In this document: one piece after another, positions 13,710-59,865 of the stretch
How the letters are laid out: each line of letters begins with the position of its first letter
Position numbering within the stretch: the first letter of the stretch is position 1
NCBI RefSeq assembly: GCF_046119375.1
Contig: NW_027362896.1
Location: forward strand, 248,001 to 312,000
DNA from: Phyllobates terribilis
Lineage: Eukaryota
Direction: 5' to 3'
Length of the DNA: 64,000 nucleotides
The notes under the pieces: generated by a model
Database searches by the model: none
Seen by the model: only the letters and a program-made list of their open reading frames with translations
What the model was told of the DNA's origin: nothing
Position numbers and translations under genes: made by a program

Positions 13710-13792
13710 CTGGAGGAAACACATACAGGGACTGAATTCATTCTTTACATACAGATAATTATAGGCCGTGTGTATTTAGTCCTGTCTATTAC

Positions 13793-13916
13793 CTGGTGAT
13801 GTGAGGGGCTGGGGAACCTCCATCATGACGTCCTTGTACAGATCTTTGTGTCCTTCTAAATACTCCCACTCCTCCATGGAGAAATAGACGGCGACATCCT
13901 GACACCTTATAGGAAC
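13793..13916 (-). CDS. KRAB-ZNF gene 1 exon 3, KRAB-A box
   Basis: [41 protein letters not shown], with canonical AG/GT boundaries, 124 nt. Confidence 0.92.
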
Positions 13917-14644: not shown

Positions 14645-15727
14645 AGCGGAGCCGCGTGTGTACGAGGTGTACGGAGCGGAGCCGCGTGTGTACGAGGTGT
14701 ACGGAGCGGAGCCGCGTGTGTACGAGGTGTACGGAGCAGAGCCGCGTGTGTACGAGGTGTACGGAGCGGAGCCGCGTGTACGAGGTGTACGGAGCAGAGC
14801 CATGTGTGTACGAGGTGTACGGAGCAGAGCCGCGTGTGTAAGAGGTGTACGGAGCGGAGCCAGGCGTGTACGAGGTGTACGGAGCGGAGCCGCGCGTGTA
14901 CGAGGTGTACGGAGCGGAGCCGCGCGTGTACGAGGTGTACGGAGCGGAGCCGCGCGTGTACGAGGTGTACGGAGCGGAGCCGCGCGTGTACGAGGTGTAC
15001 GGAGCGGAGCCGCGCGTGTACGAGGTGTACGGAGCGGAGCCGCGCGTGTACGAGGTGTACGGAGCGGAGCCGCGCGTGTACGAGGTGTACGGAGCGGAGC
15101 CGCGCGTGTACGAGGTGTACGGAGCGGAGCCGCGCGTGTACGAGGTGTACGGAGCGGAGCCGCGCGTGTACGGAGCGGAGCCGCGCGTGTACGGAGCGGA
15201 GCCGCGCGTGTACGAGGTGTACGGAGCGGAGCCGCGCGTGTACGAGGTGTACGGAGCGGAGCCGCGCGTGTACGAGGTGTACGGAGCGGAGCCGCGCGTG
15301 TACGAGGTGTACGGAGCGGAGCCGCGCGTGTACGAGGTGTACGGAGCGGAGCCGCGCGTGTACGAGGTGTACGGAGCGGAGCCGCGCGTGTACGAGGTGT
15401 ACGGAGCGGAGCCGCGCGTGTACGGAGCGGAGCCGCGCGTGTATGAGGTGTACGGAGCGGAGCCGCGCGTGTACGAGGTGTACGGAGCGGAGCCGCGCGT
15501 GTACGAGGTGTACGGAGCGGAGCCGCGCGTGTACGAGGTGTACGGAGCGGAGCCGCGCGTGTACGAGGTGTACGGAGCGGAGCCGCGCGTGTACGAGGTG
15601 TACGGAGCGGAGCCGCGCGTGTACGAGGTGTACGGAGCGGAGCCTCGCGTGTACGAGGTGTACGGAGCGGAGCCGCGTGTGTACGAGGTGTACGGAGCGG
15701 AACCGCGTGTGTACGAGGCGTACGGAG
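14645..15727. repeat. 30-bp CpG-rich VNTR (GGAGCGGAGCCGCGCGTGTACGAGGTGTAC)n upstream of gene 1
   Basis: Lines 14881-15120 are perfect 30-bp periodic copies. Occasional 21-bp units occur. There are 6 CpG per unit. Confidence 0.97.
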
Positions 15728-15981
15728 AGGAGTATCCCGATTTATCTATCTGCACCCTCTGAATAGAGCGAGTTCTGGTCACTAAGACGAATGATGATGG
15801 GAGTGTACGTGCATGAAGGAAGCTGTCAGTTTCTATGCACCTTCACTTACCTCACTATGGCTGTATACATGTTTGTATGTATTTCAGCCATTAACTCCTT
15901 GTTCGGTCTAAGATGATGTAAGGTGGCTTTCGGACACATAGTTGATGGGAATTATGTATCACAGAGGTGGTTGTCCTAGAC

Positions 15982-17424
15982 CAGGGGTCTCAAACTCAGC
16001 TGGGTATAAGGGCCGCACACGGAAAAACATTTAATTTGGGGGGCCGCATTGTTTGCATGACAAAGTGACATTTTTAGTGATACCATTTTATTTTCTATAC
16101 ACCTTTTGAACTGGTCCTCATCTTGCAGACATGGTCTCCCCTCCAGGTCCCCCATATTGCAGACATGGTCTCCCCTCCAGCTCCCCCATATTGCAGACAT
16201 GGTCTCCCATGCAGGTCCCCCATATTGCAGACATGGTCTCCCATCAAGGTCCCCCATATTGCAGACATGGTCTCCCATCCAGGTCCTCCATATTGCAGAC
16301 ATGGTCTCCCATCCAGGTCCTCCATATTGCAGACATGGTCCCACATATTGCCGACATGGTCCCCCATTCAGATCCCCCATATTGCAGACATGGCCTTCAT
16401 ATTGCAGACATGGTCCCCATATTGCAGACATGGTCCCCCATATTGCAGACATGGCCTTCATATTGCAGACATGGTCCCCATATTGCCGACATGGTCCCCC
16501 ATCCAGGTCCCCCAATATTGCAGACATGGTCACCCATCCAAGTCCCCCATATTGCAGACATGGTTCCCCATATTGCAGACATGGTCCCCCATCCTGGTCC
16601 TTATGTTGCAGACATGTCCCCCATCCAGGTACCCATGTTGCAGACATGTCCCCCATCCAGGTGTCCCCCTATACTGCGCACAGGGCCGCCCCCCCATACT
16701 GCGCACAGGGTCCCCGCCCCCTCCCCCATACAGCGCTCAGGGTCCCAGCCCACCCCATACAGCGCTCAGGATCCCCCCCCCCATACAGCGCTCAGGGTCC
16801 CACCCCATATAGCGCTCATGGTCCCCGTCCCCATCCCCCCATACTGCGCTCAGGGTCCCCCCCCCATACTGTGCTCATGGTCCCCGTCCCCCCATACTGC
16901 ACTCAGGGTCACCGCCCCCCCATACTGCGCTCAGGGTCCCCGTCCCCCCATACTGCGCATGGTGCCCCCCCCCCTATACTGAGCACAGGTCCCCTGTGCT
17001 GTATCTCGCATGACAGAGAAAAAACTAAAAAAAGATTCTCACCTGTCCTCCGTTCCCTCGGCGTCCTTTCTGCACCTGTGGCCGCAGGCACAGACCCCGT
17101 AACGATCGCGGCTTTCTCCAGCAGCCGCCGATATCAGCGCTGTAGTGCAGTGTATTGCCGCGCGGAGGCCAGCAGCTGACATCTGCCCATGTCAGTGACG
17201 TCATACGCCGCCGCGCTGGGACGCAGATGTCAGCTGCTGGCCTCTGATAGGCTGGCACTGATATTGCTGTGCACAGAGCCGGTCTCTGCACGGCCATATA
17301 CTGCACTACAGCGCTGATATCGGCGGCTGCTGGAGAGAGCCGCAATCATTACGGAGTCTATTTGCCTGCGGGCCGCAAGAAGCAGCCGGAGGGGCCACAT
17401 TTGGCCGCGTGTTTGAGACCCCTG
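15982..17424. mobile_element. Non-autonomous hAT element with internal minisatellites and hairpin (copy A)
   Basis: TIR CAGGGGTCTCAAAC...GTTTGAGACCCCTG and 8-bp TSD TCCTAGAC (15974-15981 and 17425-17432). Confidence 0.93.
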
Positions 17425-23036: not shown

Positions 23037-26000
23037 TAACCACCTTGGATTTAACTAAGAAATATTGGCAAATCCCCATGTCACAAGAAGCCAAGAAGAA
23101 GACTGCCTTCTCTATGCCCGACGGATGTTTCCAATATGTCCCGATGCTGTTTGGTCTGCAGGGAGCCCTGGCCACCTTCCAGAGTGCCATGGACTGGATC
23201 CTCGCAATCCGTAAGAATTACACTGCATCATACTTTATATATCGTAATCTTCAGCCCAGATTGGAGATGTCACCTGCAAAAGGTCCAGGCGGCGTTTGAT
23301 CCTCTCAGGAAGGCAGGGTTTTCTATAAATCTGAAAACATTTTGCCATGGGAAATAAAGAGGCCAAATAACTAGGATATGTAGTAGGTAGAGGCGAGATC
23401 AAACCCCAGATCAGTAAAGTAGATGCAATCCAAAACTGGCCAAGACCACTCTTAAAGAAGCAAGTTAGAGCCTTTCTGAAAATGAAAATAACGGACAGTG
23501 AGTCATGTAATGTGTGGTCTCTAAGTAAAGGTAATGTGACGGGAGCTAGTTACCCCATCCGCAGATGTCCAATCTTCTTCTGCCGGCCCCTGACATGGAA
23601 AGGCTTTTCTTACACTGGGATATATAAAATATGACTATCGCACTGTGTCTCCAAGATGAACTAAAACTTTTATTCTTACAAGCAGGTTTTATAGAGAATC
23701 ACACAGGCTATTTTTTAGCACCCATTGTTCTCACCAGATAATACCCACAGTAGGCTCCCAGACAGCAGTTATGCAACAACCCATTAATCAGCACATTGTC
23801 TGTTGGCCCCTGCTAAGTGAGCACAGGAAGGTGGGGGTCAGGAGTGCTTCGGTCACATCACAGCATGTCCAACAATATGCGATCCACAATATTCACCCCA
23901 CTTTGTAACATTATGTCCCATTAGCTGCATAGGCGCTACGACAACCCCCATGTGGCAAAATCTTGGAGTACGGGGTTGATCCGTCACAATCCTCCCCCTT
24001 CTCGGACATGATCGGCCTACCCAGTCTGCTCCCCGACGGATCAGCTGGAGGAGGTCCACGATTTATGAGGTTGGTAGCAGGTCAGTTTGTCGGCTTAGTC
24101 CATCGGCGTTACCATTTTGCTTGCCGGGTCTATAGTGGATGGTGAAGTCTAACGGTTGTAGCGCCAAACTCCACCGTAGTAGTCTGGCATTGTCCCCGGA
24201 GACCCGATTAAGCCATACCAGGGGGTTATGATCCGTTATGAGGGAATACTATCTTCCATACAAATATATTTACAAATACTACTGCCAGGCATTCCTTTTC
24301 GATGGCCACATAGCTGACTTCTCGAGGCAGTAATTTCCGACTCAGATAAGCTATTGGGTGTTCTTGGCCGTCCGGCCCAACTTGGCTCAGTACTGCCCCT
24401 AACCCAAACATAGATGCGTCCGTGTGAACAAGGAAACATTTAGTTGGATCGGGTGCGGCCAATATCGGGGTATTTGTGAGAGCGTCCTTTAGCTGGCGGA
24501 AGGCTTCCTCACACTCGGGGGTCCAAGTTAACTGGCGGGGGAGGTTCTTACGTGTCAGATCAGTGAGGGGCTTGGCAATGCTGCTGTAATTAGGGACAAA
24601 TTTCCTATAATACCCTGCTGTCCCTAGAAAGGCCATGACTTGGGTTTTAGCATGTGGGGTGGGCCACTTGGCTATGGCCTCAATCTTGGCGGGTTCCGGT
24701 CGTTGTTTTCCACCCCCCACCCAATGTCCTAAATACTGCACCTCTGCTTTGCCTACGTGACACTTGTTGGGATTCAGGGTGAGTCCGGCTTTGTGGATCC
24801 TATCCAATACTGTCTCTAGATGATTTAGATGCTCATCCCATGTCGCGCTGTAGACGGCGATGTCATTCAGGTAGGCACAAGCATAGTCCTGGAGACCATC
24901 CAGAAGCCGGTCAGCCAGCCTCTGGAAGGTCGCGGGGGCATTCTTCATCCCAAATGGCATAACCCAAAACTGGAATAAGCCAAACGGGGTGACAAATGCA
25001 GACTTGGGAATAGCATCAGGACTTAGGGGAATCTGCCAATAGCCTTTGCATAGATCGATGGTGGTCAAATACTTTGTCCCAGCCAGCCGGTCTAACAACT
25101 CGTCCACACGCGGCATGGGATACGCATCTGTCACAGTTTTCTCATTTAGCTTGCGATAGTCTACCCAAAACCGGGTAGTCCCATCTTTCTTAGGCACTAA
25201 CACTACAGGGGACACCCAGGGACTATCTGACTCCTCAATGACCCCTAAACGCAACATCTCCTGTATCTCTTGTCGCATCCCTTCTCGTACAGACTCCGGG
25301 ACGCGGAAGGGGGGTTGTCTCAGGGGGGTCTGATCTTGTGTCTCAACCTTGTGTTGTGCAAGTCGGGTGAACCCCGGTCTCTCTGAGAACATCCTCTGAC
25401 GCTGCCTCAGCAATGTCTCGGCCTGCTCTCTCTCCCGGGTCCCTAGGTTTTCTCCTAAGTGTACCTGGTCCCAGGTTTTCGACTGAGTCCTCTCACCTAA
25501 GACATCAGGTAAGGGGAGTTCGGCTAAATCCTCTGCTTCGGGTGCGCAGATGGAAGCTACCTCTTCAGGGCGCTCCCGGTAGGGCTTCAGCATATTCACG
25601 TGGAACATGCGGATAACCCTGGGGTCGTCACAATCGGCGACATTGAAGGTGGTGTCGGCTATTTTCCCCACTACCCGGTAAGGCCCCTGCCATGCGGCCT
25701 GGAATTTGTTCTGCCTAACTGGTTCTAGTACCAGGACCTTCTGTCCTATCTCGAAGGTGCGTTCTCTAGTCCTCTGATCGTACCATACGCGCTGGAGCCG
25801 TTGGGCCGCCTGCATGTTCACGCACACAGCCTGAGTCAACTCCTGCAGGCGGTCCCGGAGTTCCAGCACGAAGGGCACGATAGGGGTTCCTGCTATGGTT
25901 TCCTCCCCTTCCCAGAGTTCTCGTACTAAGTCTAGGGGCCCCCTCACCCGCCTCCCATATAACAGTTCAAATGGGGAGAACCCCGTAGATTCTTGGGGCA

Positions 26001-26697
26001 CCTCCCGATAGGCGAACAGGAGGTGCGGCAAGAATTTCTCCCAGTCCCTGTAGGTCCGGGTGAACGTCCCAATGAGTTGTTTTAACATTCCGTTAAAGCG
26101 CTCACACAACCCATTGGTTTGCGGGTGGTATGGGGCGCTTCTAATGGACTTTACACCACACAGTCTCCACAGTTGGCTGGTCACCTCTGCCGTAAATTGG
26201 GTGCCCTGGTCCGAGATAATCTCCCGGGGAAATCTAACCCGTGAGAAAACCTGGAGCAGAGCAGCCCCCACCGTCTCTGCCAGTATGTTAGGTAAGGCAA
26301 CCGCCTCTGGATACCGCGTGGTGTAATCTATCACTGTCAATATATACCTTTTCCCTGATGGACTGGGTTTGGCTAACGGCCCTATCAGATCGACCGCTAC
26401 TCGGCTAAATGGCTCCTCCACAATGGGAAGGGGGTGTAATTTGGCCTTGCAGCGATCTCCCCTCTTGCCAATGCGCTGGCAACTGTCACAGGTCTGGCAG
26501 TACTGACGAACATCATGGAATAACCCTGGCCAAAAGAAGTTTTGTGTCAGATGATGCCTGGTGGGGCTGACTCCGAGGTGCCCCGCCAAGGGTATGTCAT
26601 GAGAGATTCGCAGCAACTCCTGCCTATACTTTTTGGGAACTACCAGCTGTCGTTTTACAGTGGGGCTCGTCCCTGAGTGAGTTTGCCCGGTAACCCT

Positions 26698-27138
26698 AGC
26701 AAAAAAGAAGCAAGACAAAAATATATCTCATACCCTACCATAATTATATATAAATGTAAAGCAAAGTTGCATAATAAATATAGGGTACTTAGTGAACTAT
26801 TTTTGATCAAAAAAAGTATACAAGCCGTCCCACCAGCGGCAAGGTGACCCTAAATTGGGACGGTACCTATACTGCCTATATTAAAAACCTTACTGTATAT
26901 CAAAGTTGAAGTAATGCATATAAAAGGGTAGACAAATAGGACCGGGTCCCAACTTTTTTTGATCAAAAATAGTTCACTAAGTACCCTATATTTATTATGC
27001 AACTTTGCTTTACATTTATATATAATTATGGTAGGGTATGAGATATATTTTTGTCTTGCTTCTTTTTTGCTAGTGTGAACATGCCTCTGTTTCTTGTATG
27101 TCTGCCATCTTAGACCTCAGTTCACATTGTCTGGTTTT
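26698..27138. mobile_element. 441-bp fold-back insertion with 16-bp TSD, tentatively Penelope-like terminal sequence
   Basis: Absent from copy B. TSD TTTGCCCGGTAACCCT at 26682-26697 and 27139-27154. Perfect 122-bp inverted arms at 26696-26817 and 26952-27073, 134-bp spacer and 65-bp one-sided tail. The family assignment comes from architecture and recall only. Confidence 0.6.
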
Positions 27139-28617
27139 TTTGCCCGGTAACCCTGTAGAGGAGTCCCTGATGCCATATAAACTGTTCACCTTCCAGTACC
27201 CCTCTTCCCTCCTGTGCCTTCCCGCGATACCCCTGCAATGAGGGATCCTCTAGTACCTCCTTCCTAAATTCTGCTGGGGTGTCCCATGAAATGTGTCTGG
27301 CTATGGGAATACGAGAAGAGCTGTAGTGTCTTACCTGGGCCTCCTCCGAGTGTGATTCCGCCTCCGCAGCTCGAGCTTGTCTCCGGGTAGTGACAGGATA
27401 TGTTTCAGCCATAGCCACCGATGCCGGGTCGGCTTCGTCTTGGTAGCAGTGTACAGCGGCCCGGTTGAAGGTAGTCGTTTCCGGTTTTGGCCACTGGGTG
27501 CGCTGGGTCCGGTTGGGACAGTGTCTCTGCAGGTGACCCAGTTGATGGCAGGTGTGGCATCGCACCCCAGGAGGACTCTGGTAGGCCGGGGTATTGGTGG
27601 GTCCCCCGCCAAGCTTCTGTGGTTTAGGGGCCTCCAGACCCATGGGAGGGCCCCTTGAGACAGTTTTGGACCCTGACAATTGGGCCCTCCTGGCATCATA
27701 ATGTTCATCGGTCAGTCCCGAAGCCATTCTTGCGTCTCGGGAGTTAACCCAGTAAAAGAATCGTTCTAACATGATGAGCTGTAGGACGTCCTCCTTCGTG
27801 TCTGCTTTGCTACCTTGTACCCACTGTAAGCGTGACTGCCATAGTTTACAGGCCCATTCAGCGTGGGTATCCGTTTCCCGTTTTGTGGTTTTGCGGAACT
27901 TTTGACGGTATGCCTCTGGTGTTAGAGCATACCGGGCCAAGATCACTTCTTTGACTCGCTTATAGTCCATACAGTCCTGATCCGATACAGTGCGATAGGC
28001 ATCCGCTGCCCGGCCTGTCAGCTTGTTGGCCAGAATCTGGACCCAATCCTCCGGCTCCACTTTATGAAGTGTACACTGCCGCTCAAAGTCCTGCAGAAAG
28101 CCATCAATGTCTTCCTCTGCCTCCCCCAACTGTCGGAAGGCATTGTATTGGATCATTTTGTGGCTTACCCCTGCTGGTACCGGGGAGGAAGCCAGGGCTT
28201 CCCCAGCTCGCTGTATCTCCTGTCTCCGCTCCGCCATCTCCATCTTGGCTAGCTCTATCTTGGTCCGCTCTGCCATCTCCATCCTGGCTAGCTCCATCCG
28301 CTCTGTCCTCTCCATCTCCATCTTTTTATCCAGATCAGTACGCACATCAGCCATCACCTTATCTATGATCTGTACTGCCGGGTTGGGAGCATAAAGTGCC
28401 AGTCTGCTCTTTACCTCCCTCTGGAATTCAGTCTCTTCCACGTTCCCGTTGGAGGTTGTTGCATTGTCGAGCTCCATAATGGCTGCTATCAAATCCGCTT
28501 TTGTTTTGTTGCTGGCGGTTAACCCTCGAGCTTCCACAAGGTTCTTCAAAGTATTCCTCTTTAGCTTCCGGTAGATATCTTCCATTCAGTCCTTGGTTCC
28601 TGAAGAAGATGGACCGC

Positions 28618-29398: not shown

Positions 29399-30438
29399 TT
29401 AATCCCTTTTTATTTTGTGTAACTGTATATGCTGTATTAAACATGAACCCTGCGTGAAACATTTCCCACATTCTGGACATGAATATAGCTTTTCTCCAGT
29501 GTGAATTCTTTGATGTTTTTGAAGATCTGGTTTCCGGATAAAACATTTCCCACATTCTGAACATGAATATGGCTTCTCTCCTGTGTGAATTCTGTAATGT
29601 TTATGAAGATCTGGTTTCTGGATAAAACATTTCCCACATTCTGAACATGAATATGGCTTTTCTCCAGTGTGAATTCTTTGATGTTTTTGAAGATCTGGTT
29701 TCCGGATAAAACATTTCCCACATTCTGAACATGAATATGGCTTCTCTCCTGTGTGAATTCTTTGATGTTTATGAAGATCTGATTTCTGGATAAAACATTT
29801 CCCACATTCTGAACATGAATATGGCTTCTCTCCTGTATGACTTCTGTAATGTTTAAGCAAATTTGACTTATTGCTGAAACATTTCGCACATTCTGAACAT
29901 GAAAATGGCTTTTCTCCTGTGTGACTTCTTTGATGCATAAGCAATTTAGATTTATGTTCAAAACATTTCCCACATTCTGGACATGAATATGCCTTCTCTC
30001 CTGTGTGAATTCTTTGATGTTTATGAAGATCTGATTTCTGGATAAAACATTTCCCACATTCTGAACATGAATATGCCTTCTCTCCTGTGTGAAATTTTTC
30101 ATGTTTATGAAGATCTGGTTTCTGGATAAAACATTTCCCACATTCTGAACATGAATATGGCTTCTCTCCTGTGTGAAATCTTTGATGTTTAAGCAATTTA
30201 TATTTAGTTTTAAAACATTTCCCACATTCTGAACAGGAAAATGGTTTCTTCCCTGTGGGAATTATTTGATGTTCGACATCCCTTCTCTGGCTTTCATTTT
30301 GCTTAACAGTCTGTGATGAATCCAAGTAGATGACGGATTGAAAAGGCTCAGATGATTGATTTTTGCTCTGAAGGGCTGGAGGTATAGCTGGAATAATGGC
30401 ACGCTTTTCATGGGTATCTGGTTTGACACCACAGTCAT
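29399..30438 (-). CDS. KRAB-ZNF gene 2, last exon: 10 C2H2 fingers
   Basis: Acceptor TATTCTTGGCAG ends at 30439, phase 1, TAA at 29399-29401. The joined CDS is 1611 nt, or 536 aa plus stop. Confidence 0.93.
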
Positions 30439-30858
30439 CTGCCAAGAATAAATCTGATTTTATTATTTTTTTATATCAATTCCTTATATTTTATAACATT
30501 TCTCTATACATACATACAGGCAGAAACGTTTCAGGCAATAAAAGGAGGATTAAAAATAAGCTTTATTACATTACAATCTACAGCAACAGATAAAAATACA
30601 CGCCATAAAAACATGTAAGATGGGGTATTCACATCTCCGAGAAACTATACCAATATGTAGGAGGTGTAATAAAAATAAGATTAGCAAATATCTCCAATTA
30701 GAAATGTAGTATAGTTCTTCTGATTCGCTATGTCACTTACCCCATGTTCAGGGCATTGCAAGTTAGTTGCTAGTGGTCATAACTATGGATACCTAAGCTA
30801 CTGCAATGCTCTGCACATGGGGTAAGTGACAAAGAATCAGGAGAACTATACCACATTT

Positions 30859-31361
30859 CTAATTGGAGTCTGAATAAACCTCGACCTCACACATCGACAG
30901 GTACTCCGAGGGTCATGGGATCACCATGCTGACGTAGCGACCCTCCATCCCCTTACAGCAGAAGGACAAGGTGGCAGAGACCACATTCGTGACTGTGCCG
31001 CGTACTGGAATGTTATTGTCGGGGGAGTTCCCGATTCGGACCTCGGCCCCCATCAGTCGCTCAGGGCAACAGTCCATCCTGTTGGTTATGGCGACGCTGG
31101 ATGTCTTGTAGCTCTTGCCCAGGTCCAGCTTCCACCAGGGATCCTTCTCCAGGTTGGTGTGGGTGCAGAAGTCACTATTGAAGTCGGTGTCTTTGTTCCC
31201 ATCAATGGCGTTCTTAGCCAATATGCTCCTGGTGGCATACGGATAGTCCGACACCTGGGAGGTCACTCCGGTCCTTGCTATGTTTGTGGTCCATGTGCAG
31301 GAGCAAATCCCAGAGCCAGAACCACAGATCCCAGTAGAATCAGAGAAGATACAAGATTCAT
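30859..31361 (-). pseudogene. F-type lectin (fucolectin) pseudogene, sense to the ZNF host, copy A
   Basis: Signal peptide MNLVSSLILLGSVVLALGFAPA followed by an FTLD with the H-x26-R-x-D-x4-R fucose-binding motif. Lesions: a 1-nt deletion after the signal peptide and TGA at 30913-30915. Confidence 0.9.
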
Positions 31362-31483
31362 CCTGCAGGAGATGTAAGTGAAGGTCCTGTGTAATCTCCA
31401 CATCTGATAAATGCTGGTTCCCTGGTAATCAGTGACTATTCCCTGCAGTCTGTACTCACAGGAGCAGCTCCTGCACAATCTGG

Positions 31484-31943
31484 ATGAATCTTGTATCTTC
31501 TCTGATTCTACTGGGATCTGTGGTTCTGGCTCTGGGATTTGCTCCTGCACCTGGACCACAAACATAGCAAGGACCGGAGTGGCCTCCCAGGTGTCGGACT
31601 ATCCGTATGCCACCAGGAGCATATTGGCTAAGAACGCCATCGATGAGAACAAAGACACCGACTTCAATAGTGACTTCTGCACCCACACCAACCTGGAGAA
31701 GGATCCCTGGTGGAAGCTGGACCTGGGCAAGAGCTACAAGACATCCAGCGTCGCCATAACCAACAGGATGGACTGTTGCCCTGAGCCACTCATGGGGGCC
31801 GAGGTCCGAATTGGCAACTCCCCCGACAATAACATTCCAGTGTGCGGCACAGTCACGAATGTTATCTCTGCCACCTTGTGCTTCTGCTGTAAGGGGATGG
31901 AGGTCGGTACGTCAGCGTGGTGATCCCAGGACACTCGGAGTAC
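31484..31943 (+). pseudogene. F-type lectin inverted duplicate (antisense arm), 3'-truncated, copy A
   Basis: Reverse complement of 30901-31361, with frameshifts, R>P in the fucose motif (CCPEP), and an end at IPGHSEY. Confidence 0.9.
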
Positions 31944-32196
31944 ATTTCTAATTGGAGGTATTTTCTGTTATTATTATCACACCTACTATATTTTGGGATA
32001 GGATTTTGGAGATGGGAATACCCCTTCAAGGCTGTACGCTTAGGACTTATCCAGGACTCATCCAGATGCCTCATTCCATTGTTTTTTTGTGATTACATTG
32101 ATCCCTCTTAAATGGCTTTTTGTATTTTTATGTGTTTTCAACTGCGATCTAATAAATTGTATTTTTAATCTCTATATTGTCTCACATTTCTCTGTA

Positions 32197-32321
32197 CACA
32201 GTCATGGTTGAAATAGTTGGCGCCCTTAAAATTGTTCCAGAAAATGAAGTATTTCTCCTAGGACATTATTGCAATTACACCTGTTTTGTTATAGACACGT
32301 TTATTTCCTTTGTGTGTATTG
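32197..32321 (+). mobile_element. Tc1-like left-end fragment (also 62664-62788)
   Basis: CAGTCATGGTTGAAATAGTTGGCGCCCTTAAAATTGTTCCAGAAAATGAAG resembles Tc1 TIR starts. Confidence 0.55.
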
Positions 32322-32825
32322 TCACTGATCTTTTCTAGTGAAATGTTCAATGGAGAATCAAAACTGGGCTTTGACCAGATTAATACCTGACCCTACTTCT
32401 CAACCCTTTCCTGATCTGCCTACATACTTCTTGTTGACCGCAGAACGGTTTGGCTTCTCACTTGACTGCCCTTCCGGGACATGTACTGCTGCTAGATATT
32501 GACCTTGGCTTCTCCAGCTTAGATGTCCACCTGCCTGACTTCTGTGTGTGACCCGGCTCTATTCTTGACATTCAGCTGTAATCTGGCAACTCACAACTAC
32601 ATTACAATTGGAGACATGGTGCCTTTCTGCAGCAAATAAAGCTCTGAGCATTAAAGATTTGCTGCCAAAACGCGTTAATCAAAAAAAGTGAAAAAAAAGC
32701 TTTTGTTTTATTACGCATCAAATCTATCTGCAAGTAAAATGCACGTCAATTACTTGTGTGATCAAACTCATAATATAATGACCACAGGATCTGTGACTTC
32801 TCTGCATTTAGTGGTCAGTACTCAC

Positions 32826-32916
32826 CTGGGTAGTCATATGTAGGAATCTCCTCTTTACACCGCTCATCACCCCTCACATATGTCTCTGTAGTATTAATAT
32901 GGGGCAGATCTTCACC
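32826..32916 (-). CDS. KRAB-ZNF gene 2 exon 5
   Basis: Paralog of 13323-13413, AG/GT intact, 91 nt. Confidence 0.88.
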
Positions 32917-33114
32917 CTGAAACAAATATTGTAAAAGTCACAGACAGATGGAGAAGTCACATCTATGATCAGCTCTAATCCTGCCATCTCCACCGTTCTC
33001 ATTACACAAGTATAAAACATATAATACTGGTGGATAAAACAAGACTGAGCACAAGACCTTCACAGCCGTCTACACATCATAGGGGAGATCTCATGACACC
33101 TTCTCTCCATCTAC

Positions 33115-33212
33115 CTGATGATCCTGAGGAACATTGGGATCTTCTTGTTTACAGTCCTGTGGAAGAAGAGGACGGGGACATCTCTCTGGTGTTGTCCTCT
33201 TACTGGATAGAT
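33115..33212 (-). CDS. KRAB-ZNF gene 2 exon 4
   Basis: Paralog of 13612-13709, 98 nt. Confidence 0.88.
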
Positions 33213-33295
33213 CTGGAGGAAACACATACAGGGACTGAATTCATTCTTCACATACAGATAATTATAGGTCATGTGTATTTAGTCCTGTCTATTAC

Positions 33296-33419
33296 CTGGT
33301 GATGTGAGGGGCTGGGGAACCTCCATCATGACGTCCTTGTACAGATCTGTGTGTCCTTCTAAATATTCCCACTCCTCCATGGAGAAATAGACGGCGACAT
33401 CCTGACATCTTATAGGAAC
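33296..33419 (-). CDS. KRAB-ZNF gene 2 exon 3, KRAB-A box
   Basis: [37 protein letters not shown] intact. Confidence 0.92.
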
Positions 33420-33502
33420 CTGACACATACAATGATACCGTCATCCCCCCGATCCCTCCATAGCGTTACTGTATAATGTCCCAGCATTCCCAGCAGTGTC
33501 AC

Positions 33503-33682
33503 CTCTCCAGTCAGCAGCTCAATCATCTTGTAGGTGAGTTCTAGGATCTTCTGGTCATTGATGTCCTCATGTATCAGGGGGTGAGGTGGAGGTCCTGTGA
33601 TTGGGCTCAGGGGTCTTCCCCATCCCTCAGACACAGGGTCCTGACAGCGCCCACTAGAGGTCTTCTTCACTACTGTGTAATC
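33503..33682 (-). CDS. KRAB-ZNF gene 2 exon 2 (FAX-like)
   Basis: DYTVVKKTSSGRCQ...KMIELLTGE, 180 nt. Confidence 0.88.
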
Positions 33683-33811
33683 CTGGTTATGGAGAGACAC
33701 ATTAATAAATCTCCCTCCAGACATTTCCAGAGTCCTCACCTCTCCAGTTCTGTCCATCTGTTATTCCCATAGATAAGAATGATGTAATGTGACGTCATCA
33801 GAATCTCTCAC

Positions 33812-33889
33812 CTCTCCAGTAAGACGGAAGAGGATCTCTAGGGTGAGGTGGAATATCCTCTCCGCCATCTTCTCTCTGTCCATATCCAT
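33812..33889 (-). CDS. KRAB-ZNF gene 2 first coding segment (MDMDREKMAERIFHLTLEILFRLTGE)
   Basis: ATG at 33889. The exon acceptor is at 33953 and an in-frame TAG at 33911-33913 precedes the ATG. Confidence 0.8.
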
Positions 33890-34683
33890 CTTTGACAGGA
33901 AACTTCTCTTCTATAGAAGATATTCACTGAGAGGATCCGATATTGTAGAGACCTGAATGAGAAGAAGATGAGAAGATGTAACGTCATCAATAATTCTATG
34001 TAATAATACAATCACTGATTCTGGTATAAAGCAGTAATCTGTGGATCTGATCCTGGATGATGCCGGAAGAAGAAGTGGATTTTTATGGCGGCCATTAATG
34101 AGCTTCGCTCTGAGGACCAGAGGAGGTTCGGCCTGAACGCTGCACTCGTGGTGTGAACACAGACATATTAAAAGTAAAAGGTAGATAGTTCCTAACTGCC
34201 TTCCTTAATGTCTGCCGGAACAGAGCGGTCACGGACTGCTCCTGCTGGTGACTCTGCGGCTCCTGATGAGTCACGTAGACGGAGCAGCGGCTTCTCTTTG
34301 GCTCTGCTTTCTTGATGGGACGTGACTGACGACATCACACTGATTGTCAGCAGCCTCCCTGCGAGCAGCCAGATGTCAATCAGAGGGATGATTTATTTCA
34401 CCATGCAAGAAAAGCAGACACAAAATAGACGCACAGTGTGAATAACGGCTAATCCTGATAGAGAGTAATGGAGACTCCACATACCTCCACCTGCAGAGCC
34501 GCCACCACATATATGGCTGCTCTGTGCACACAGGACCTGTGATGAGGTCACAGGAGGGGAGGAGTCAGGGGTCACATGATCAGGGGCCTTAGTGGGTGCA
34601 GGACTCTGCTGTGCTGGTTGTCATGGTGCTGGATGAGCTGAAGTTTATGTGTGGGGTCAGGAGGGGTTTACAGTGTGGATGTA

Positions 34684-35600
34684 GCAGAGCCGCGTGTGTA
34701 CGAGGTGTACGGAGCAGAGCCGCGTGTGTACGAGGTGTACGGAGCAGAGCCGCGTGTGTACGAGGTGTAAGGAGCAGAGCCGCGTGTGTACGAGGTGTAC
34801 GGAGCAGAGCCGCGTGTGTACGAGGTGTACGGAGCAGAGCCGCGCGTGTACGAGGTGTACGGAGCAGAGCCGTGTGTGTACGAGGTGTACGGAGCAGAGC
34901 CGCGTGTGTACGAGGTGTACGGAGCAGAGCCGCGTGTGTACGAGGTGTAAGGAGCAGAGCCGCGTGTGTACGAGGTGTACGGAGCAGAGCCGTGTGTGTA
35001 CGAGGTGTAAGGAGCAGAGCCGCGTCTGTACGAGGTGTAAAGAGCAGAGCCGCGCGTGTACGAGGTGTAATGAGCAGAGCCGCGCGTGTACGAGGTGTAA
35101 TGAGCAGAGCCGCGTGTACGAGGTGTAAAGAGCAGAGCCGCGTGTACGAGGTGTAAAGAGCAGAGCCGCGCGTGTACGAGGTGTAATGAGCAGAGCAGCG
35201 TGTACGAGGTGTACGGAGCAGAGTCGCGCGTGTACGAGGTGTAAGGAGCAGAGCCGCGCGTGTACGAGGTGTAAAGAGCAGAGCCGCGCGTGTACGAGGT
35301 GTAATGAGCAGAGCCGCGTGTACGAGGTGTAAGGAGCAGAGCCGCGCGTGTACGAGGTGTAAGGAGCAGAGCCGCGCGTATACGAGGTGTAAAGAGCAGA
35401 GCCGCGCGTGTACGAGGTGTAAAGAGCAGAGCCGCGTGTACGAGGTGTAAAGAGCAGAGCCGCGCGTGTACGAGGTGTAATGAGCAGAGCCGTGTGTGTA
35501 CGAGGTGTACGGAGCGGAGCCGCGCGTGTACGAGGTGTACGGAGCGGAGCCGTGTGTGTACGAGGTGTACGGAGCGGAGCCGTGTCTGTACAAGGTGTAA
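34684..35600. repeat. 30-bp CpG-rich VNTR upstream of gene 2 (GGAGCAGAGCCGCGYGTGTACGAGGTGTAM variants)
   Basis: Paralog of the 14645-15727 array, more heterogeneous, with 28-30-bp units. Confidence 0.95.
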
Positions 35601-35619
35601 GGAGAGCAGCTTTGAGTTG

Positions 35620-46782: not shown

Positions 46783-49363
46783 CTAAGAGGATCCTCCGGA
46801 TCCCCTAGGACCAGGCTTATCAGGAAATTTCCTGTGAAACGCTCTGATAAGTCTGGACGCGGAAACATCATCCGACCTCACCCAAGAGTTATCCTCGGGA
46901 CCGAAACCTTTCCAGGCCACAAGATACTGCAAACTACCTCTATACCGTCTAGAGTTAAGGATGCGAGAAATTTCATATTCTCCGTCCTCCACCACCGGAG
47001 GAACAGAGGCAGAGGCGTCACAATCCGATACAACAGCTTTTTTCAACAGAGAGACATGAAATACCGGATTAATTCTCCAGGAGGTAGGAACCTCCAACCT
47101 AACAGCAGATTGGTTGACAACCTGAAGCACCTTAAAGGGCCCTACAAACTTGGGACCCAATTTCTTTGAAGGAATCCTCAACCGCAGATTCCTAGAGGAC
47201 AACCAAACCATGTCACCAACAGCGAACAAAACCTCCTGTCGTTTCCTATCAAAGTAGTCTTTAGATTTTCTGTTGGCCTCCTGAAGATTACCACGCACAT
47301 CCGTCCAAACTCTCTCCAAATCACCGGAAAAATTCTCCTCCTCAGGCACGGCAGATCCCAACTTGGAGAACGACCCAAACGACGGATGTCTCCCAGAACA
47401 ACAAAAAAAAGGCGAACAACCAGCAGAAGAAGATGTATGATTGTTCAGAGCAAATTCAGCAAGTGGCAGAAACTCAGACCACCCCTCATGATTGTCTGCC
47501 ACAAAACAACGCAAGAACTGCTCAACATCCTGGTTTTTCCTTTCTGTCTGGCCATTAGATTTAGGATGATATCCGGACGAGAACGACAAATGAACTCCCA
47601 ACCTATCACAAAAGGCACGCCAAAAACGAGCCACGAACTGAGGACCCCTATCAGAAACAATGTCAGTAGGAACGCCATGAAGTCTGACAATTTCCTTGAC
47701 AAAGGCCTTAGCGAGAGTTTTAGCGCAGGGCAGTTTGACGAAAGGAACCAAGTGACACATCTTGCTAAAACGGTCCACGACCACCCAGATGACAGTAAAA
47801 CCCTCAGAGGGGGGAAGGTCAGTTATAAAGTCCATAGGCAAATGTGTCCAAGGAGCACTGGGAACCTCCAAAGGACAAAGCAACCCCGCAGCAGGAGTAT
47901 GTGAGGACTTAGATCTAGCACATATAGTACATTGACGCACCCACTTAATGACTTCCTTCTGCCATCCAGGCCACCAAAAACTGCGACCCACCAGTCTCTT
48001 GGTCTCAGAGATTCCGGGATGACCTGCCAACCGAGATTCGTGACACTCAACAAACAAATCTCTCCTAAAGGTCCCAGGCACAAACAACCTCCCATGAGGA
48101 GTGTTAGAAGGGGCATTCTCCTGTGCTTTAAGAATCTCATTTTCCAAAACGGAGTCCAAAGCAGCTATCACAACACCTTCTTGTAAAATGTTCTCCTCTT
48201 TCTCAGCACCGACTATGGGAGAAAAACTGCGAGACAAGGCATCCGCCTTAACATTCTTAGTACCAGGGATGTAAGTAACGGAGAAATTAAACCGCGAGAA
48301 AAACAGTGCCCACCTAGCCTGACGGGCATTCAGGCGCTTGGCAGCATCAAGATATATCAGATTTTTATGATCCGTAAGAACCTGAACGGGAAATTCCGCA
48401 CCTTCCAAGAAGTGGCGCCAGTGTTCAAATGCGAGTTTAATAGCCAATAATTCCCGATTACCAATATCGTAATTCAGTTCAGTCTCCGAAAATTTTTTTG
48501 AAAAAAAGGCACAGGGATGTAATCCATCCCCGTTATCCTGAGACAATACTGTGCCAACCCCCACAGAGGAAGCATCAACCTCAACCAAAAACGGCCTAGT
48601 AACATCAGGCTGCATAAGGATGGGAGCAGAGGTGAACCTCTCCTTGAGATACACAAAAGCTTCAATGGCCTCAGAAGACCACTGAACCGCATCAGCACCT
48701 TTCCTGGTGAGATCAGTCAGAGGTTTGACAATACTAGAAAAATTTTTTATGAATTTTCTGTAGTAATTGGCAAAACCCAAAAACCTCTGTATCGATTTCA
48801 AACCAATAGGCCTAGGCCATTCCTGCACAGCCTGAACCTTAACCGGATCCATCTCAAAACCTTTGCTGGAGATAATGTAGCCCAAAAAACTAATTCTCTG
48901 TACAGCGAACTCACATTTCTCCAGCTTAGCAAAAAGCGAATTGTCCATTAATAACTGTAATACCTCACGCACGCTCCGCCAATGAGACTCCAGATCCGGC
49001 GAATAAATCAAAATGTCATCCAAATACACAACCACATTTTTGCCGATCAAAGGTCTAAGGATGTCATTAATCAGATTCTGAAAAAATGCAGGAGCATTAG
49101 TGAGACCAAAAGGCATAACCAGATTCTCAAAATGACCCACAGGAGTGTTAAAAGCAGTCTTCCATTCGTCACCCTCCTTCATGCGCAACAGATTGTATGC
49201 CCCCTTAAGGTCAATTTTAGAGAACCACTTGGCCCCCATTAACTGGTTAAACAGATCAGGAATCAATGGCAGTGGGTAAGGATTGCGTACAGTAATTTTG
49301 TTAATCTCACGAAAATCCAGACAAGGACGTAAACCGCCGTCCTTTTTTTTTACAAAAAAAAAA
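46783..49363 (-). CDS. pol: Chromovirus pol: RT (YLDD), RNase H, integrase (HHCC, DDE, GPF), chromodomain
   Basis: ORF 46783-49671 is genuine pol only downstream of the T10 run at 49354-49363. It ends with EYEISRILNSRRYRGSLQYLVAWKGFGPEDNSW. Confidence 0.92.
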
Positions 49364-50851
49364 TCCAACCGCCACAGGAGACTTAGAGGGCCTAATGTGA
49401 CCGGCGGCCAAACTTGTCTGTATGTATTCCTCCAAAGCCTTCCTCTCAGGAATAGTAAGGTTAAATAAACGACTTTTAGGAAGAGTCGCTCCAGGGACAA
49501 ATTCAATAGAACAATCATAGTCTCTATGGGGAGGCAAAACCTGCGATTCCTTCTCAGAAAAAACTCTCCAAAAATCCTGAATAGGAACAGGCAATTCTCC
49601 CCTATCCAAAGCTGCAATACGCCCGTTACAACACTTGTCATAACATTTATGGCTCCAGGATTTAATTTCACTGGTAGACCAATCCAGTACAGGATTGTGA
49701 AATTTTAACCAGGGCAATCCCAATATTACTGGAGAAGGCAAGTTATTCAACACTACCAAATCCAATTTCTCATGGTGAACACCATTAATAGTGAGAGGAA
49801 ATTCACAGACCTTGAGAGTAATATTCTTCAAAGGGGAACCATCCACAGAAACCACAGCAATGGGGGATGATAAAGGTTCAGGTTTTAAATTGAGTCTTTC
49901 CACGAATCCCCCATCAATTACATTCAGAGTAGACCCACAATCAACAAACACCCAAAATTCCATTAATTTTTTCTGAGCAATCGTGGAAGCAGCTAAAAAT
50001 ATACCCTTGGAATTTAAACAGGCAATACGGGCGTGACTGACCATTTTTTTTTCTTTCTTCATACGAAGCTCACAGCCTTTAATCAAATGACCAGATTTTC
50101 CGCAATAGAAACACAAGCCTTCAGAAAATCGACGGTCTTTTTCTTGAGAGCGAGGTGCCACCGATCCAATCTCCATCGGTTCACCACTATTAGTACACAC
50201 ATTCTCATAACCAGAAACTGACATAGCAGAGGATTTGCTCTCATTAACCCTTGCACGCAGTCTTCTATCCACCCGTATAGCTAATTGCATAGCCTGTTGC
50301 AAATCTTCAGGTGTAGGATAAGCAATTAGCAGGTCTTTAACCCTTTCACTGAGCCCAGCAAGAAATAGACTTTTCAGAGCAGAATCGTTCCACCCTGTTT
50401 GAGTAGACCAACGACGGAAATGAGTACAATATTTTTCCACATTACCTGATCCCTGTTTTAAACGTCTCAACTCAGTCTCAGCTGATGCGACACGGTCAGG
50501 ATCATCATATAATAGTCCCAAAGCAGAAAAAAAACTATCCACTGATCTGAAGCATGTATCACTAGGTTGCAAAGAAAAGGCCCACTCCTGAGGCTCTTTG
50601 CGCAAAAGTGACATTATGAACCCTACGCGCTGGGATTCATCCCCAGAGGACTTAGGTCTCAAACGAAAATACAATAAGCAAGCATTTTTAAATGAAAAAA
50701 ATTCTCGGTGTTCACCAAAAAATAAATCCGGCAAACATACCTTAGGCTCCAAGAAATGTGCTCCAGGACAGTTACTCACGTGCTGACGGAGCTCGGCCAC
50801 CTCCAGAGAGAGTCCCTGCAGGCGATGAACCAAATCCTGAACTGACACCAT
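49354..50851 (-). CDS. gag: Chromovirus gag-protease-RT N-terminus
   Basis: MVSVQDLV.., capsid, CFYCGKSGHLIKGC knuckle, protease FVDCGST, and RT start LPPHRDYDCSI..IRPSKSP. Confidence 0.92.
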
Positions 50852-52599
50852 GATGGAACAGAAAAATCTTTCCTTAGAGAATTTGCTGGCTGGACTTACT
50901 GTTATGTTCTGCTACCAGAGCTAAGGAAAGAGAGGAGATCTGTCCCTACGATAGAACTCAGCTTAATCCCTACGATGTAACAGGGGACCTAATCCTGCGA
51001 TCAGACCTGCTAAAGTCCTAAGCTAGTCTGTACGGAGACCTATAGATGTGGGGAAGGAATCCCTACAAGTACTAAGGACTGGGAGGAATATGGGACACCT
51101 CCTAACAGAAATAGTAGCAGACAGACGAACAAACAAAATATATAGAACATAGAGGTCAGTAGACCAAGCAAACTAACAGAGCAAGACACAGAGCACAGGC
51201 TAGCTAGAAAGTAGATATACAATGAAGTCCAGCAAAGCCAGAAGGGCGGAGCAGGATTAAATAGGCTAACAAGGTCATGTGACCAGCAAAGGAAAAAAAA
51301 CCTAAGAGCAAGGTTCTAACACTAATCTCTCCTTCAAACCTCATATCCAAGCCCTTTCCACTTCATGCCGACTCCAATTCAAAAATATTTCCCGGATCCG
51401 CACATTCCTCAACCATGAATCTGCAAAAACACTAGTGCGTGCCCTCATCATCTCTCTCCTCGACTACTGCAACCTCCTGCTCAGTGGTCTCTCTTCTAAC
51501 ACTCTCGCACCCCTGCAATCCATCCTAAACTCTGCTGCCCGACTAATGCACCTGTCCCCCCGCTGTCTCTTCCCGCTGCCAATCCCTGCACTGGCTCCCC
51601 ATTGCCCAGAGACTCAAGTTCAGGACCCTAACCTTGGCATACAAAACCATCCATAGCCTGTCTCCTCCATATAACTATGACCTAGTCTCCCGGTACCTAC
51701 TTGCATGCAACCTCCGATCCTCGCAGGACCACCTTCTCTACTCTGCTCCTTTCTCCTCTTCCCACAATTGCATACAAGATTTCTCCCATGCATCCCCCCT
51801 ACTCTGGAACTCTCTACTCCAACACGTCAGACTCTCGCCTACCGTGGAAACCCTCAAAAGGAACCTGAAGACCGACCTCTTCCGACAAGCCTACAACCTG
51901 CAGTAACCCTCACTGCATGACCAGCTGTACCCTCACCTACGGCATCCTCACCCCCACTTCTACATTGTGAGCCCTCACGGGCAGGGTCCTCTCGCCTCCT
52001 GTGCCAGTCGGTGACTTATTTTTGTTTAAACTATTGTACTTGTTGTCTGCTATGTATACCCCTTTTTCACATGTAAAGCGCCATGGAATTAATGGCGCTA
52101 TATTAATTAATAATAATAACCAGGAAGACTAAAACTGTACCAAGTGTACGTATGTGGCAAGATAGGGAGCCAGTTGAAACTCCGTGTTTTCTGGACACGC
52201 CAGAAGCAGATGTTGAAAGAGTCATAATAGCAAAGATGCCGTTGAAGGCTCAAAAATAGCAGTGCGGGAGTTGTTGCAGCCGAACAGGGACCTGTTCTTA
52301 GAATTGCTATTTTGTACAAAGGTCATAGAACATGAGGTTCTGATTTAATCCCATGTGCGGGTGAACTTGAAGCCCTATCTAATTCCTGAGTCCTGGCAAG
52401 AGCTATTCTCCAAGGAATCTCTGAGTCATTGAGGAATCAGAGAGGGTGGTCTAGCCCTATTGTCCTGGTTCCAAAACCTGATGGCGAATGGAGGTTCTGT
52501 AACGATTATAGGAAGCTGAATGAAGTCCAAGTTCAACGCATATCAGATGCCGTGTGTCGATGATCTGATCGCGAGACGTGGGCTGGCAAGGTATATAAC

Positions 52600-53960
52600 T
52601 GTGTGACCCACTACTACTCAGGTAGCGTTAGCCCTCCCTGGGAAAGGTGTACTCGGACGGCGGGCCGGTGGTAGAGGGGGATGCAGTCGTGGCCTTGGCC
52701 CGGTCCGTGGCCAGGGCGCACACATTAAAAATATGGGGTAGTGCATGAGTGGTTATTTGTCGGCTACGCCACCTGTGGTTTCTGCTGAGGACCACCAGCG
52801 CTGCGACAGTCCTCTGAGGCCGGTGTTCTAGCAGCTTGGGATGGAATAGCTCCCCACAGGTGGAGCTAGGCCTCAGGGCAGAGTAGAAGAAGTGCAGTGC
52901 AGAGGAATGGTGGGTGCGGTGCCGCGCAGAAATGAGAGAGAAGAGGCGGTGTATGAAGTCATCCAGGTTTTACTCACGGTAGACTTGTTTTCAGCAACAA
53001 AGCTTCTCTTTGTTCCTCACGGCGCGCTGCGGCCACCAGGATGGGGTTCAGCTCACTCCGGGTAGCTCGGGTGCACCAGACAAAACCCCTGCACCAGTGT
53101 GTTCCTCTCACTTGCTGTACTAGAACCGCCTCGTGCCCCTACTAAGTCCCGTACGGGTACCGCAATGTCCGCTGAAGGTGGCTTGTAGCCCCCGGACCGC
53201 CTAGGTCCCTTATTGGTGACTGGGGTGTAAACGTGGCGTAATGCTGGGGTCCCTCTGGATAGACGCAGATTAAGGGGATACAGGTGGCGACTCCGCTCCA
53301 TCCGTATTCCCCCTGGGATCCACTTCTGCCTCCGGACTTTTCTGACAGAGACCTGGAGTACAAAGTCAGATAATCGGGGACCGGTACCCCCTCTTGCGGC
53401 AGGAGTCTCTCTGGCGGGGCCAGAATAAGGGTAGCAGGTGGCGACTCCGCTCCGTCCACATCCCCTGAGATCCTTTCGCCTGTGGAGCTCTTCTCCTCTG
53501 CTCCCCTCCTAGGCTTTCTGGTGTGAACTAAGACATAGGACACAGCCAGCTGTAACTCAACTCTGCCCCAGCCCCCAATCTCAAGGCCTGAGACCGGGAA
53601 TAGCAGCATCTTGAGGCAGCTGCAGCTTGTACTAACTGTCACCTCCAGGGAACTGCGACAAAAGACCCGGTATTAAAGATGGCATCCATATTTATATGGA
53701 TGTATTAGTGTAACCGTAAAGTGCTTCCTCCACCCTACTCACTACAAGGTTCCCCCTACTTTTGGTTCCCCCCTTACTCCTCCATTCAGGACCGGGGCAG
53801 CACATTGTGCTCTAAACCCCCTTCAGAATGGGAGTGTGTAGTGTTGGATGTGTGGTGGGGTCCTGTGTGGTGCTCCATCCTTACCTCGGAGAGGAGATAC
53901 CACACCTCGTTCCATGAAGTGCAGTACCCCTGTGGCGACTGAACTCTCAGGGGCGCCACA
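52600..53960 (-). mobile_element. Long solo LTR-like element, copy B
   Basis: 4-bp TSD TAAC (52596-52599 and 53961-53964). Confidence 0.87.
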
Positions 53961-59556: not shown

Positions 59557-59865
59557 GGTAAATTTGCAATAAAAAAGATGGCATCACTTGCTAACTTCTG
59601 CAATCAACCAGTGAGGAGTTATCGCAGAAAATTAGAGATTTAATAAAACCAAGAAGGGCGGAGACCAGCCCACGTGAGGTCATCACAGGGGAGTGTGTGG
59701 GCAGTGCCCCTGTCGGCATAAAAGATCAGGCCGAATATTGATCTATACTCATGCCGGGTTATACATATTTGTGTAAGCGGGGGTCCTGTTCCATAACGGT
59801 TCGTTTGACTGCTTCCCTCCAGCTAAACTGAATCGTCTCTGCGATCGGCCTAGTAAGTCCTTCTA

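Follow-up and report, generated by a model that had tools for sequence, protein, structure and literature searches.

A putative semi-processed fucolectin retro-pseudogene in fold-back form within a KRAB zinc-finger cluster of Phyllobates terribilis

Introduction

How did fucolectin sequence come to lie inside an intron of a KRAB zinc-finger (ZNF) gene, and in what form has it persisted there? The question is raised by a stretch of 64,000 nucleotides from the poison frog Phyllobates terribilis (NCBI RefSeq assembly GCF_046119375.1, contig NW_027362896.1, positions 248,001 to 312,000 of the forward strand), referred to here as the window. A cassette of 1073 bp holding lectin sequence sits at 30869-31941, within a palindromic element that resembles a miniature inverted-repeat transposable element (MITE). 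An earlier sequence-only reading of this stretch described it as a captured lectin gene and considered both gene capture by a transposon and a templated insertion. We regard it as likely that the cassette is a semi-processed P. terribilis fucolectin retro-pseudogene, formed by one fold-back insertion and subsequently subject to cluster duplication and decay.

Anatomy of the cassette and its target site

The exact 16-mer ACATTTCTAATTGGAG is found in direct orientation on both sides of the cassette, at 30853-30868 and 31942-31957, and a mirror copy lies at 30692-30707. The trio recurs 30.47 kb downstream, which brings the matches in the window to six, where chance would give 0.06. Without the cassette and one 16-mer, the rebuilt empty element is self-complementary across the join (positions 74-320, 78.8% over 255 nt). 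Since it occurs once in the mirror arm, the 16-mer was originally present in one copy and was doubled by the insertion. The left arm serves as an internal empty-site reference and shows the target duplication of 16 bp. The parts of the locus are as follows (TSD, target-site duplication; UTR, untranslated region).

30853-30868, plus strand: left TSD copy, ACATTTCTAATTGGAG; its reverse complement gives the TAG stop of 179-amino-acid paralogues
30869-30900, minus strand: one-sided 32-nt tail at the distal end of arm A, codons ..LSMCEVEVYS, without a counterpart in arm B
30901-31362, minus strand: arm A, fused fucolectin coding exons (signal peptide and F-type lectin domain) with no coding introns
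31363-31459, minus strand: retained 97-nt 5'UTR intron, GTGAGT..CAG, with the acceptor directly before G-ATG
31460-31481, minus strand: 22-nt 5'UTR exon stub containing a 15-nt palindrome, CAGGAGC-N-GCTCCTG; it abuts arm B with no microhomology
31482-31941, plus strand: arm B, inverted copy of the fused exons, from 1 nt before exon 2 to ..SEY
31942-31957, plus strand: right TSD copy; its reverse complement gives the ATG of the 179-amino-acid paralogues
30619-30852, no strand: host palindromic MITE-like element, comprising the left arm with the mirror 16-mer (30692-30707), the loop and most of the right arm
31958-32027, no strand: rest of the right arm of the host palindrome, pairing with 30619-30691
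33294-33413, minus strand: host-gene exon with the KRAB box, lying upstream of the cassette (Pfam E 1.6e-10)
29402-30445, minus strand: host-gene exon with the C2H2 zinc-finger array, lying downstream of the cassette

The sequence-only reading had given the direct repeat, the limits of the cassette, the 5'UTR stub with its intron and the location in a KRAB-ZNF intron, and all of these are borne out.

The cassette contains transcript-derived sequence only and is a head-to-head inverted duplication of the lectin exon, the second, inverted copy (31482-31941) making up 43% of its length. The arms pair 30901-31363, coding on the minus strand, with 31482-31943, coding on the plus strand, at 97% over 422 nt and 87% over 47 nt; 14 substitutions and one indel in 462 nt correspond to a divergence of 3.0%. 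They are separated by a spacer of 118 nt that belongs to arm A only and consists of the 97-nt intron and the 22-nt upstream exon stub. At its outer end, arm A extends 32 nt (30869-30900) beyond its counterpart in arm B. No A-run is seen at either cassette junction, and the copy ends inside the coding sequence at ..YS(DS). The retrocopy is therefore 3'-truncated, the last approximately nine codons, the 3'UTR and the poly-A being missing. The earlier remark that this is not an ordinary processed retrocopy agrees with the absence of a poly-A tract.

The window holds a second such unit.

61320-62425, no strand: second TSD-cassette-TSD unit, in the tandem segmental duplicate, 99.5% identical

This unit had been noticed in the sequence-only reading. 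It is indeed present, but as part of a segmental duplicate and not as a separate insertion: in a tandem segmental duplication with an offset of 30.5 kb, 20389-33532 matches 51319-64000 at 98.8-99.4%. When the two cassettes are compared (30869-31941 vs. 61336-62409), all five differences fall in arm A, with none in arm B or the spacer; a distribution of this kind has a probability of about 0.02 if rates are uniform.

A partly spliced transcript as the putative template

The arms encode an F-type lectin, as judged by matches to PDB entries 3CQO (striped-bass FBP32, E 3.7e-55) and 1K12 (eel agglutinin, E 1.2e-22) and to the Pfam families PF22633 (E 3e-23) and PF00754 (E 8e-14). The fucose-binding motif H-x26-R-x-D-x4-R is present in arm A (H68, R95, D97, and R102), as are C98-C99. 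The nearest proteins are Phyllobates terribilis models named 'fucolectin-like'.

A comparison of intron positions, which the sequence-only reading had proposed, was made with fucolectin genomic DNA of three other frogs, Spea bombifrons, Engystomops pustulosus, and Leptodactylus fuscus. In all three genes the coding sequence is interrupted by introns, first behind the signal peptide (..PG|A(T/I)N..) and again within the domain (..NPV|CG..). In each of them, a pyrimidine-rich acceptor ..cag|G-ATG, the mark of a 5'UTR intron, directly precedes the start codon. The cassette is continuous at both coding-intron sites, in arm A (31290|31289 and 31004|31003) as well as in arm B (31555|31556 and 31841|31842), and its only intron occupies the very place of the conserved 5'UTR intron. 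In the nearest P. terribilis paralogue with several exons, the codons for 175 amino acids extend over 7.85 kb, compared with 450-540 bp in the cassette-derived models. Because the two coding introns are gone and the 5'UTR intron is kept, the template was a partly spliced transcript, i.e., RNA and not genomic DNA. Judged from its sequence, the cassette is a semi-processed, RNA-derived retrocopy of a fucolectin. The earlier description of an intron-containing gene is one third true, since one 5'UTR intron was kept and two coding introns were spliced out.

Proposed insertion mechanism

A fucolectin transcript with its coding introns spliced and the 97-nt 5'UTR intron retained served as the template, and in the simplest model its reverse transcription was target-primed and took place into a staggered break, offset by 16 bp, in the palindromic repeat within the KRAB-ZNF intron. 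Both 3' ends of the break may have primed on the lectin RNA. One end would have primed at CUCC (codons D-S near the C-terminus), with 4-nt microhomology to the target end GGAG, and the other at AC, 32 nt upstream of this point. In an alternative route, the first cDNA could have been copied back on itself after a template jump. Either route would yield the head-to-head arms, the 118-nt spacer in one arm, the 32-nt tail, the lack of poly-A, and the 16-bp TSD.

The junctions can be read as follows. At the outer end of arm A, lectin sequence ..TCAGA meets target CTCC, at a point where the parental proteins read ..YSDS..; CTCC is probably common to the lectin RNA and the target, which would give 4-nt microhomology with the primer end ..GGAG-3'. 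Arm B, which reads ..GGAGT on its outer side, overlaps the TSD by 2 nt, AC. The centre junction has no microhomology, and the 15-nt palindrome lies 8 nt away. Because of this lack of microhomology at the centre, dual priming or a template jump seems at least as likely as snap-back self-priming. The templated insertion by target-primed reverse transcription (TPRT), which the sequence-only reading had offered as one of its two alternatives, is supported.

A further insertion in the window has a similar architecture.

26682-27154, no strand: independent 441-bp non-coding insertion (26698-27138) with an exact 16-bp TSD, TTTGCCCGGTAACCCT

Its inverted arms are 122 nt long at 100% identity (125 nt at 99%) and are separated by a 134-nt spacer, and a one-sided tail of 62-65 nt is present. 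The insertion occurs in duplicate 1 only, the empty site being kept at 57606-57621 in the sister duplicate. It splits a retroelement open reading frame (ORF), intact in duplicate 2 with 1300 amino acids, into parts of 830 and 487 amino acids. No other copies of the 441-bp insert were found in the 64-kb window. In both insertions GTA directly follows the TSD (nick sites GGAG|GTA and CCCT|GTA). The occurrence of a second insertion with cassette-like architecture supports a recurrent enzymatic process.

Copies across the genome

In the NCBI annotation, seven distinct proteins of a 90% cluster are encoded at 12 loci on 8 P. terribilis scaffolds. Together with the first window copy, which is unannotated, there are at least 13 cassette copies. 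They fall into two protein types, of 149 amino acids (window-like) and of 179 amino acids. The latter, found at eight of the 12 annotated loci, starts with MYSECPGITTLTYRPPS, which corresponds exactly to the outer end of arm B with the right TSD when these are read on the reverse strand (window ORF 31862-32074). It ends in ..YSDSN-stop, with the stop inside the left TSD copy, and nearly all of arm B is lost at these loci. Judged from its ends, the 179-amino-acid type is the same insertion after deletion of the palindrome centre, and its start and stop codons are accidents of the TSD. In all seven proteins of the cluster, either start (ATG) and stop (TAG) both come from the TSD or the frame has one and the same nonsense codon. 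In the 179-amino-acid type, the conserved Cys-Cys-Pro of the binding pocket is changed to Cys-Gly-Leu, and in one cluster member (P0064) the fucose-binding Arg is replaced by Trp.

Each of the 12 loci outside the first window copy is placed within or next to a KRAB or zinc-finger model or a long model that has no Pfam match. At four loci the neighbouring model ends at identical offsets, 10891 at two of them and 12614 at the two others. The economical reading, which rests on annotation, is that one ancestral insertion was spread by duplication of the KRAB-ZNF cluster.

An NCBI KRAB model of 206 amino acids near the second window copy runs in the lectin orientation. Its end lies in the spacer, 95 nt before the lectin ATG, which points to use, or predicted use, of the cassette as a terminal exon of a KRAB gene.

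State of the reading frames

A premature TGA at 30913-30915, 16 codons before the domain end, is present in arm A of both window copies and removes the last beta-strand with its Cys. In the first copy, arm A has moreover lost 1 nt where the two exons meet (31290|31289), which puts the signal peptide out of the domain frame. In arm B, 1 nt is missing at the exon junction 31555|31556, and the frame shifts once more near the C-terminus. Arm A of the second copy is in frame and encodes 149 amino acids up to the same premature TGA. The sequence-only reading was right about an F-type lectin with its motif. The signal peptide with a complete domain that it saw is frameshifted in the first copy and truncated by the TGA in both. 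It also held that the MITE arm supplies the stop codon, which is true only of the 179-amino-acid paralogues elsewhere; the window ORFs end at the TGA. The frameshifts, the nonsense codon, the changes of binding-site residues, and the deletion of the palindrome centre show that the copies are decaying.

The 1-nt deletion found in arm B of both copies and in arm A of the first one concerns exactly the base with which the signal-peptide exon ended (GGAG|CC), where it was joined to the next exon. Such a coincidence may be due to chance, slippage of the reverse transcriptase (RT), or arm-to-arm conversion.

Candidate enzymes

Penelope-like insertions are known as 5'-truncated, inverted head-to-head copies with a 30-40-bp tail at one end, TSDs, and junction palindromes (PMC8557442; PMC3846280). 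These elements also mobilise host genes in trans, and such genes are framed by pseudo-LTRs (LTR, long terminal repeat) (PMC8557442; PMC3846280). The cassette shares the architecture, with its head-to-head arms, 32-nt one-sided tail, and 16-bp TSD. Since this matches the published insertions, and since the second insertion in the window has the same TSD length, fold-back arms, and a tail, the RT and endonuclease of a Penelope-like element, acting in trans, may have made the cassette; we see the chances of this attribution as evenly balanced.

Several points weigh against the account favoured here. The intron positions are known from three other frog species and not from the P. terribilis parent, and the homology of flanks between loci is one of annotation offsets and not of aligned DNA. 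In the second copy, the comparison of the arms gives 7 synonymous vs. 8 non-synonymous changes, one of them specific to this copy; this is compatible with neutral decay (binomial p ~0.1), although somewhat more synonymous than such decay predicts. As to the enzyme, the published rotifer TSDs of 8-10 bp are shorter than 16 bp (PMC3846280; PMC8557442), and with 62-65 nt the tail of the second insertion exceeds the 30-40 nt on record. No Penelope-derived sequence or pseudo-LTR was found in or next to either insertion. Rfam models gave no hammerhead or other ribozyme, either across the window at the gathering score or within the two insertions at E values up to 5, and a motif scan found no CTGANGA core. 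In a Pfam search, 19 large ORFs of the window gave Ty3-type retroelements, SCAN, and zinc fingers, with no match to a Penelope RT or GIY-YIG domain. Poison-frog genome papers mention neither Penelope elements nor the cassette locus.

The same RNA-mediated event could have been carried out by the RT of a long interspersed nuclear element (LINE) such as L1, CR1 or L2, through template jumping or twin priming. The latter is well known to give inverted retrocopies, a 16-bp TSD is within the usual L1 range, and no Penelope sequence was found in the insertion. Both L1 and CR1 elements are present in the P. terribilis genome (PMC12208295). However, a poly-A tract is absent, and GGAG|GTA and CCCT|GTA, the two nick sites, lack the T-richness of L1 targets. 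Moreover, the arms overlap over their full length, whereas twin priming on one RNA gives adjacent segments, and the one-sided tail together with the head-to-head form is described as specific to Penelope and not seen in LINE TPRT (PMC8557442). A LINE origin appears doubtful.

Alternative explanations and possible function

In the sequence-only reading, capture of the Pack-TIR type (TIR, terminal inverted repeat) stood beside templated insertion: a palindromic MITE would have taken up genomic lectin DNA (Pack-TIR or Pack-MITE) and would transpose with its cargo. The cassette does sit within a palindromic MITE-like element, and it has many genomic copies. On the other hand, the cargo lacks two of the three canonical introns, so it is not genomic DNA, and it has its own 16-bp TSD inside one arm. 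The copies lie within gene models of KRAB-ZNF clusters, with the identical neighbour offsets at four loci, and both window copies fall within 13-kb duplicated blocks; in the 64 kb no other copies of the palindrome were found beyond the two segmentally duplicated ones. We consider capture extremely improbable, the spliced cargo, the internal TSD and the ZNF-cluster location of the copies being sufficient to refute it. In another scenario, two MITE halves would have inserted separately into a lectin gene already in place, and the repetition of the 16-mer would be due to chance; its probability is practically negligible, and nothing was found in its favour. A single palindrome runs uninterrupted from one half into the other across the junction, and the mirror arm uses the 16-mer once; this contradicts the scenario and upholds the earlier claim of a true insertion into a palindromic MITE-like element. 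The supposed gene, moreover, has no promoter, flanking DNA or coding introns of its own and is doubled head to head.

Two further readings accept the insertion and assign it a function. The cassette might be a functional hairpin-RNA locus in ZNF pre-mRNA, giving endogenous small interfering RNAs (endo-siRNAs) or ADAR substrates that regulate fucolectin genes. Inverted-repeat pseudogenes are a source of endo-siRNAs in mouse oocytes and Drosophila. Here the cassette is intronic, arm A shares the orientation of the host gene, and the arms of about 462 nt are 97% complementary, with a predicted minimum free energy of about -988 kcal/mol for a hairpin of about 460 bp on the host-gene strand. However, no sequencing run recorded as RNA holds the stretch, the hairpin is not conserved, with nearly all of arm B lost at eight of the 12 annotated loci, and the arms differ at 3% of aligned positions, with indels. 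This reading seems very unlikely to us, and the intronic hairpin is most likely a decaying by-product. As for the copies being working lectin genes, as the NCBI annotation has it, or an alternative lectin terminal exon of a KRAB gene, the 179-amino-acid ORF is open from ATG to TAG at eight loci, the acceptor of the 5'UTR intron precedes the ATG in the host orientation, and the NCBI KRAB model ends inside the cassette spacer. Against this, the window copies lose the last beta-strand and its Cys to the TGA, and the first one is frameshifted. In the 179-amino-acid type CC-P has become CG-L, one member has Trp for the fucose-binding Arg, and the start and stop codons are accidents of the TSD. Open frames among copies that are about 98% identical are uninformative on selection. 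We regard working genes or exons as highly improbable; the truncation and the residue changes make a protein role of the copies unlikely.

A speculative extension, which we also rate as having very little chance of being right, is that Penelope-type machinery makes hairpins of bare host mRNAs, and that the fucolectin hairpin, transcribed within KRAB-ZNF introns at several loci, leads to long double-stranded RNA or endo-siRNAs tuning the parental immune-lectin family. If this were true, the locus would be a vertebrate counterpart of the hairpin-RNA (hpRNA) pseudogene loci of Drosophila and mouse, created in one step of retro-insertion.

Comparison with known systems and significance

The Penelope-like insertions of the rotifer Adineta vaga (PMC3846280; PMC8557442) resemble the cassette in the TSD, the head-to-head partial copy, and the absence of poly-A. 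The one-sided tail of about 30-40 bp (32 nt here) and the palindrome near the inverted junction are likewise shared. The host genes mobilised in trans in A. vaga are also similar in retaining an intron. The cassette differs in having no pseudo-LTR, hammerhead, or Penelope-like sequence, in having two of its three introns spliced, and in its vertebrate host, and the enzyme is suggested by architecture only.

Rodent preproinsulin I is reportedly a semi-processed retrogene, said to have been described as such by Soares et al. in 1985. This gene is like the cassette in being RNA-derived, with a 5'UTR intron kept, the downstream intron or introns lost, and direct repeats present. Yet Ins1 is single, functional and poly-A-bearing, whereas the cassette is 3'-truncated, without poly-A, doubled head to head, and decayed.

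L1 twin-priming retrocopies are alike in using both ends of the break as primers and in having an inverted segment and a TSD of about 15 bp. Their segments, however, come from adjacent parts of the RNA and have poly-A, while the cassette arms cover the same 460 nt, have no poly-A, and lie in a target that is not T-rich. With the hpRNA/endo-siRNA loci of mouse oocytes and Drosophila, the cassette shares a long, near-perfect inverted duplication of a protein-coding fragment; it differs in the loss of the hairpin in most paralogous copies. Pack-MULE and Pack-TIR elements are similar in that a host gene fragment lies within a TIR-like palindromic element, but the cargo of the cassette is spliced and has its own TSD, and its amplification takes along flanks far beyond the element.

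The novelty lies in the combination of known processes: a semi-processed retrocopy, a fold-back insertion of the Penelope type, and segmental amplification of a ZNF cluster. The locus provides an example from a vertebrate, at the level of junctions, of retro-copying by which a host mRNA took on the fold-back form known otherwise from Penelope-like elements, with no element sequence. If the attribution is true, Penelope machinery acts on bare cellular RNAs, and a long inverted gene repeat can be made in one step. The duplication of KRAB-ZNF clusters passively multiplies the contents of their introns. At least 12 P. terribilis models named 'fucolectin-like', 'fucolectin-1-like' or 'pentraxin fusion protein-like' would be copies of one retro-pseudogene, and such models inflate the apparent size of the immune-lectin family.

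Neighbouring features

An imperfect 15-nt direct repeat, ACATTTCTCT[A/G]TACA, at 30496-30510 and 32184-32198, brackets the whole palindrome. Inside this repeat, the outer flanks 30521-30648 and 32078-32194 are weakly complementary (about 64%). The ACATTTCTCT repeat may be an old TSD of a larger fold-back element. Sub-threshold Rfam microRNA matches on the palindrome loop are generic hairpin matches.

A third KRAB exon, at 13791-13910 on the minus strand, belongs to an older ZNF unit, in which 13287-14390 matches 32789-33890 at 97%. The part of its intron that can still be aligned contains no lectin cassette or palindrome. A GC-rich minisatellite of 30 bp, with 31-37 copies at 92-93% identity, is found in two of the three ZNF units (14645-15732 and 34683-35604), and further arrays of 20-61 bp occur at 16119-16994.

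The retroelement ORF that is split by the 441-bp insertion is of the Ty3 type (55153-59052 and 24229-28585, both on the minus strand), with a SCAN-like gag and the integrase upstream of the RT and RNase H. The same domain order characterises Gmr1/Gmr30-like elements, from which the SCAN domain has been proposed to derive. Between the duplicated units, an apparently intact chromovirus-type Ty3 element (46786-50851, minus strand) encodes gag, protease, RT, RNase H, integrase, and a chromodomain.

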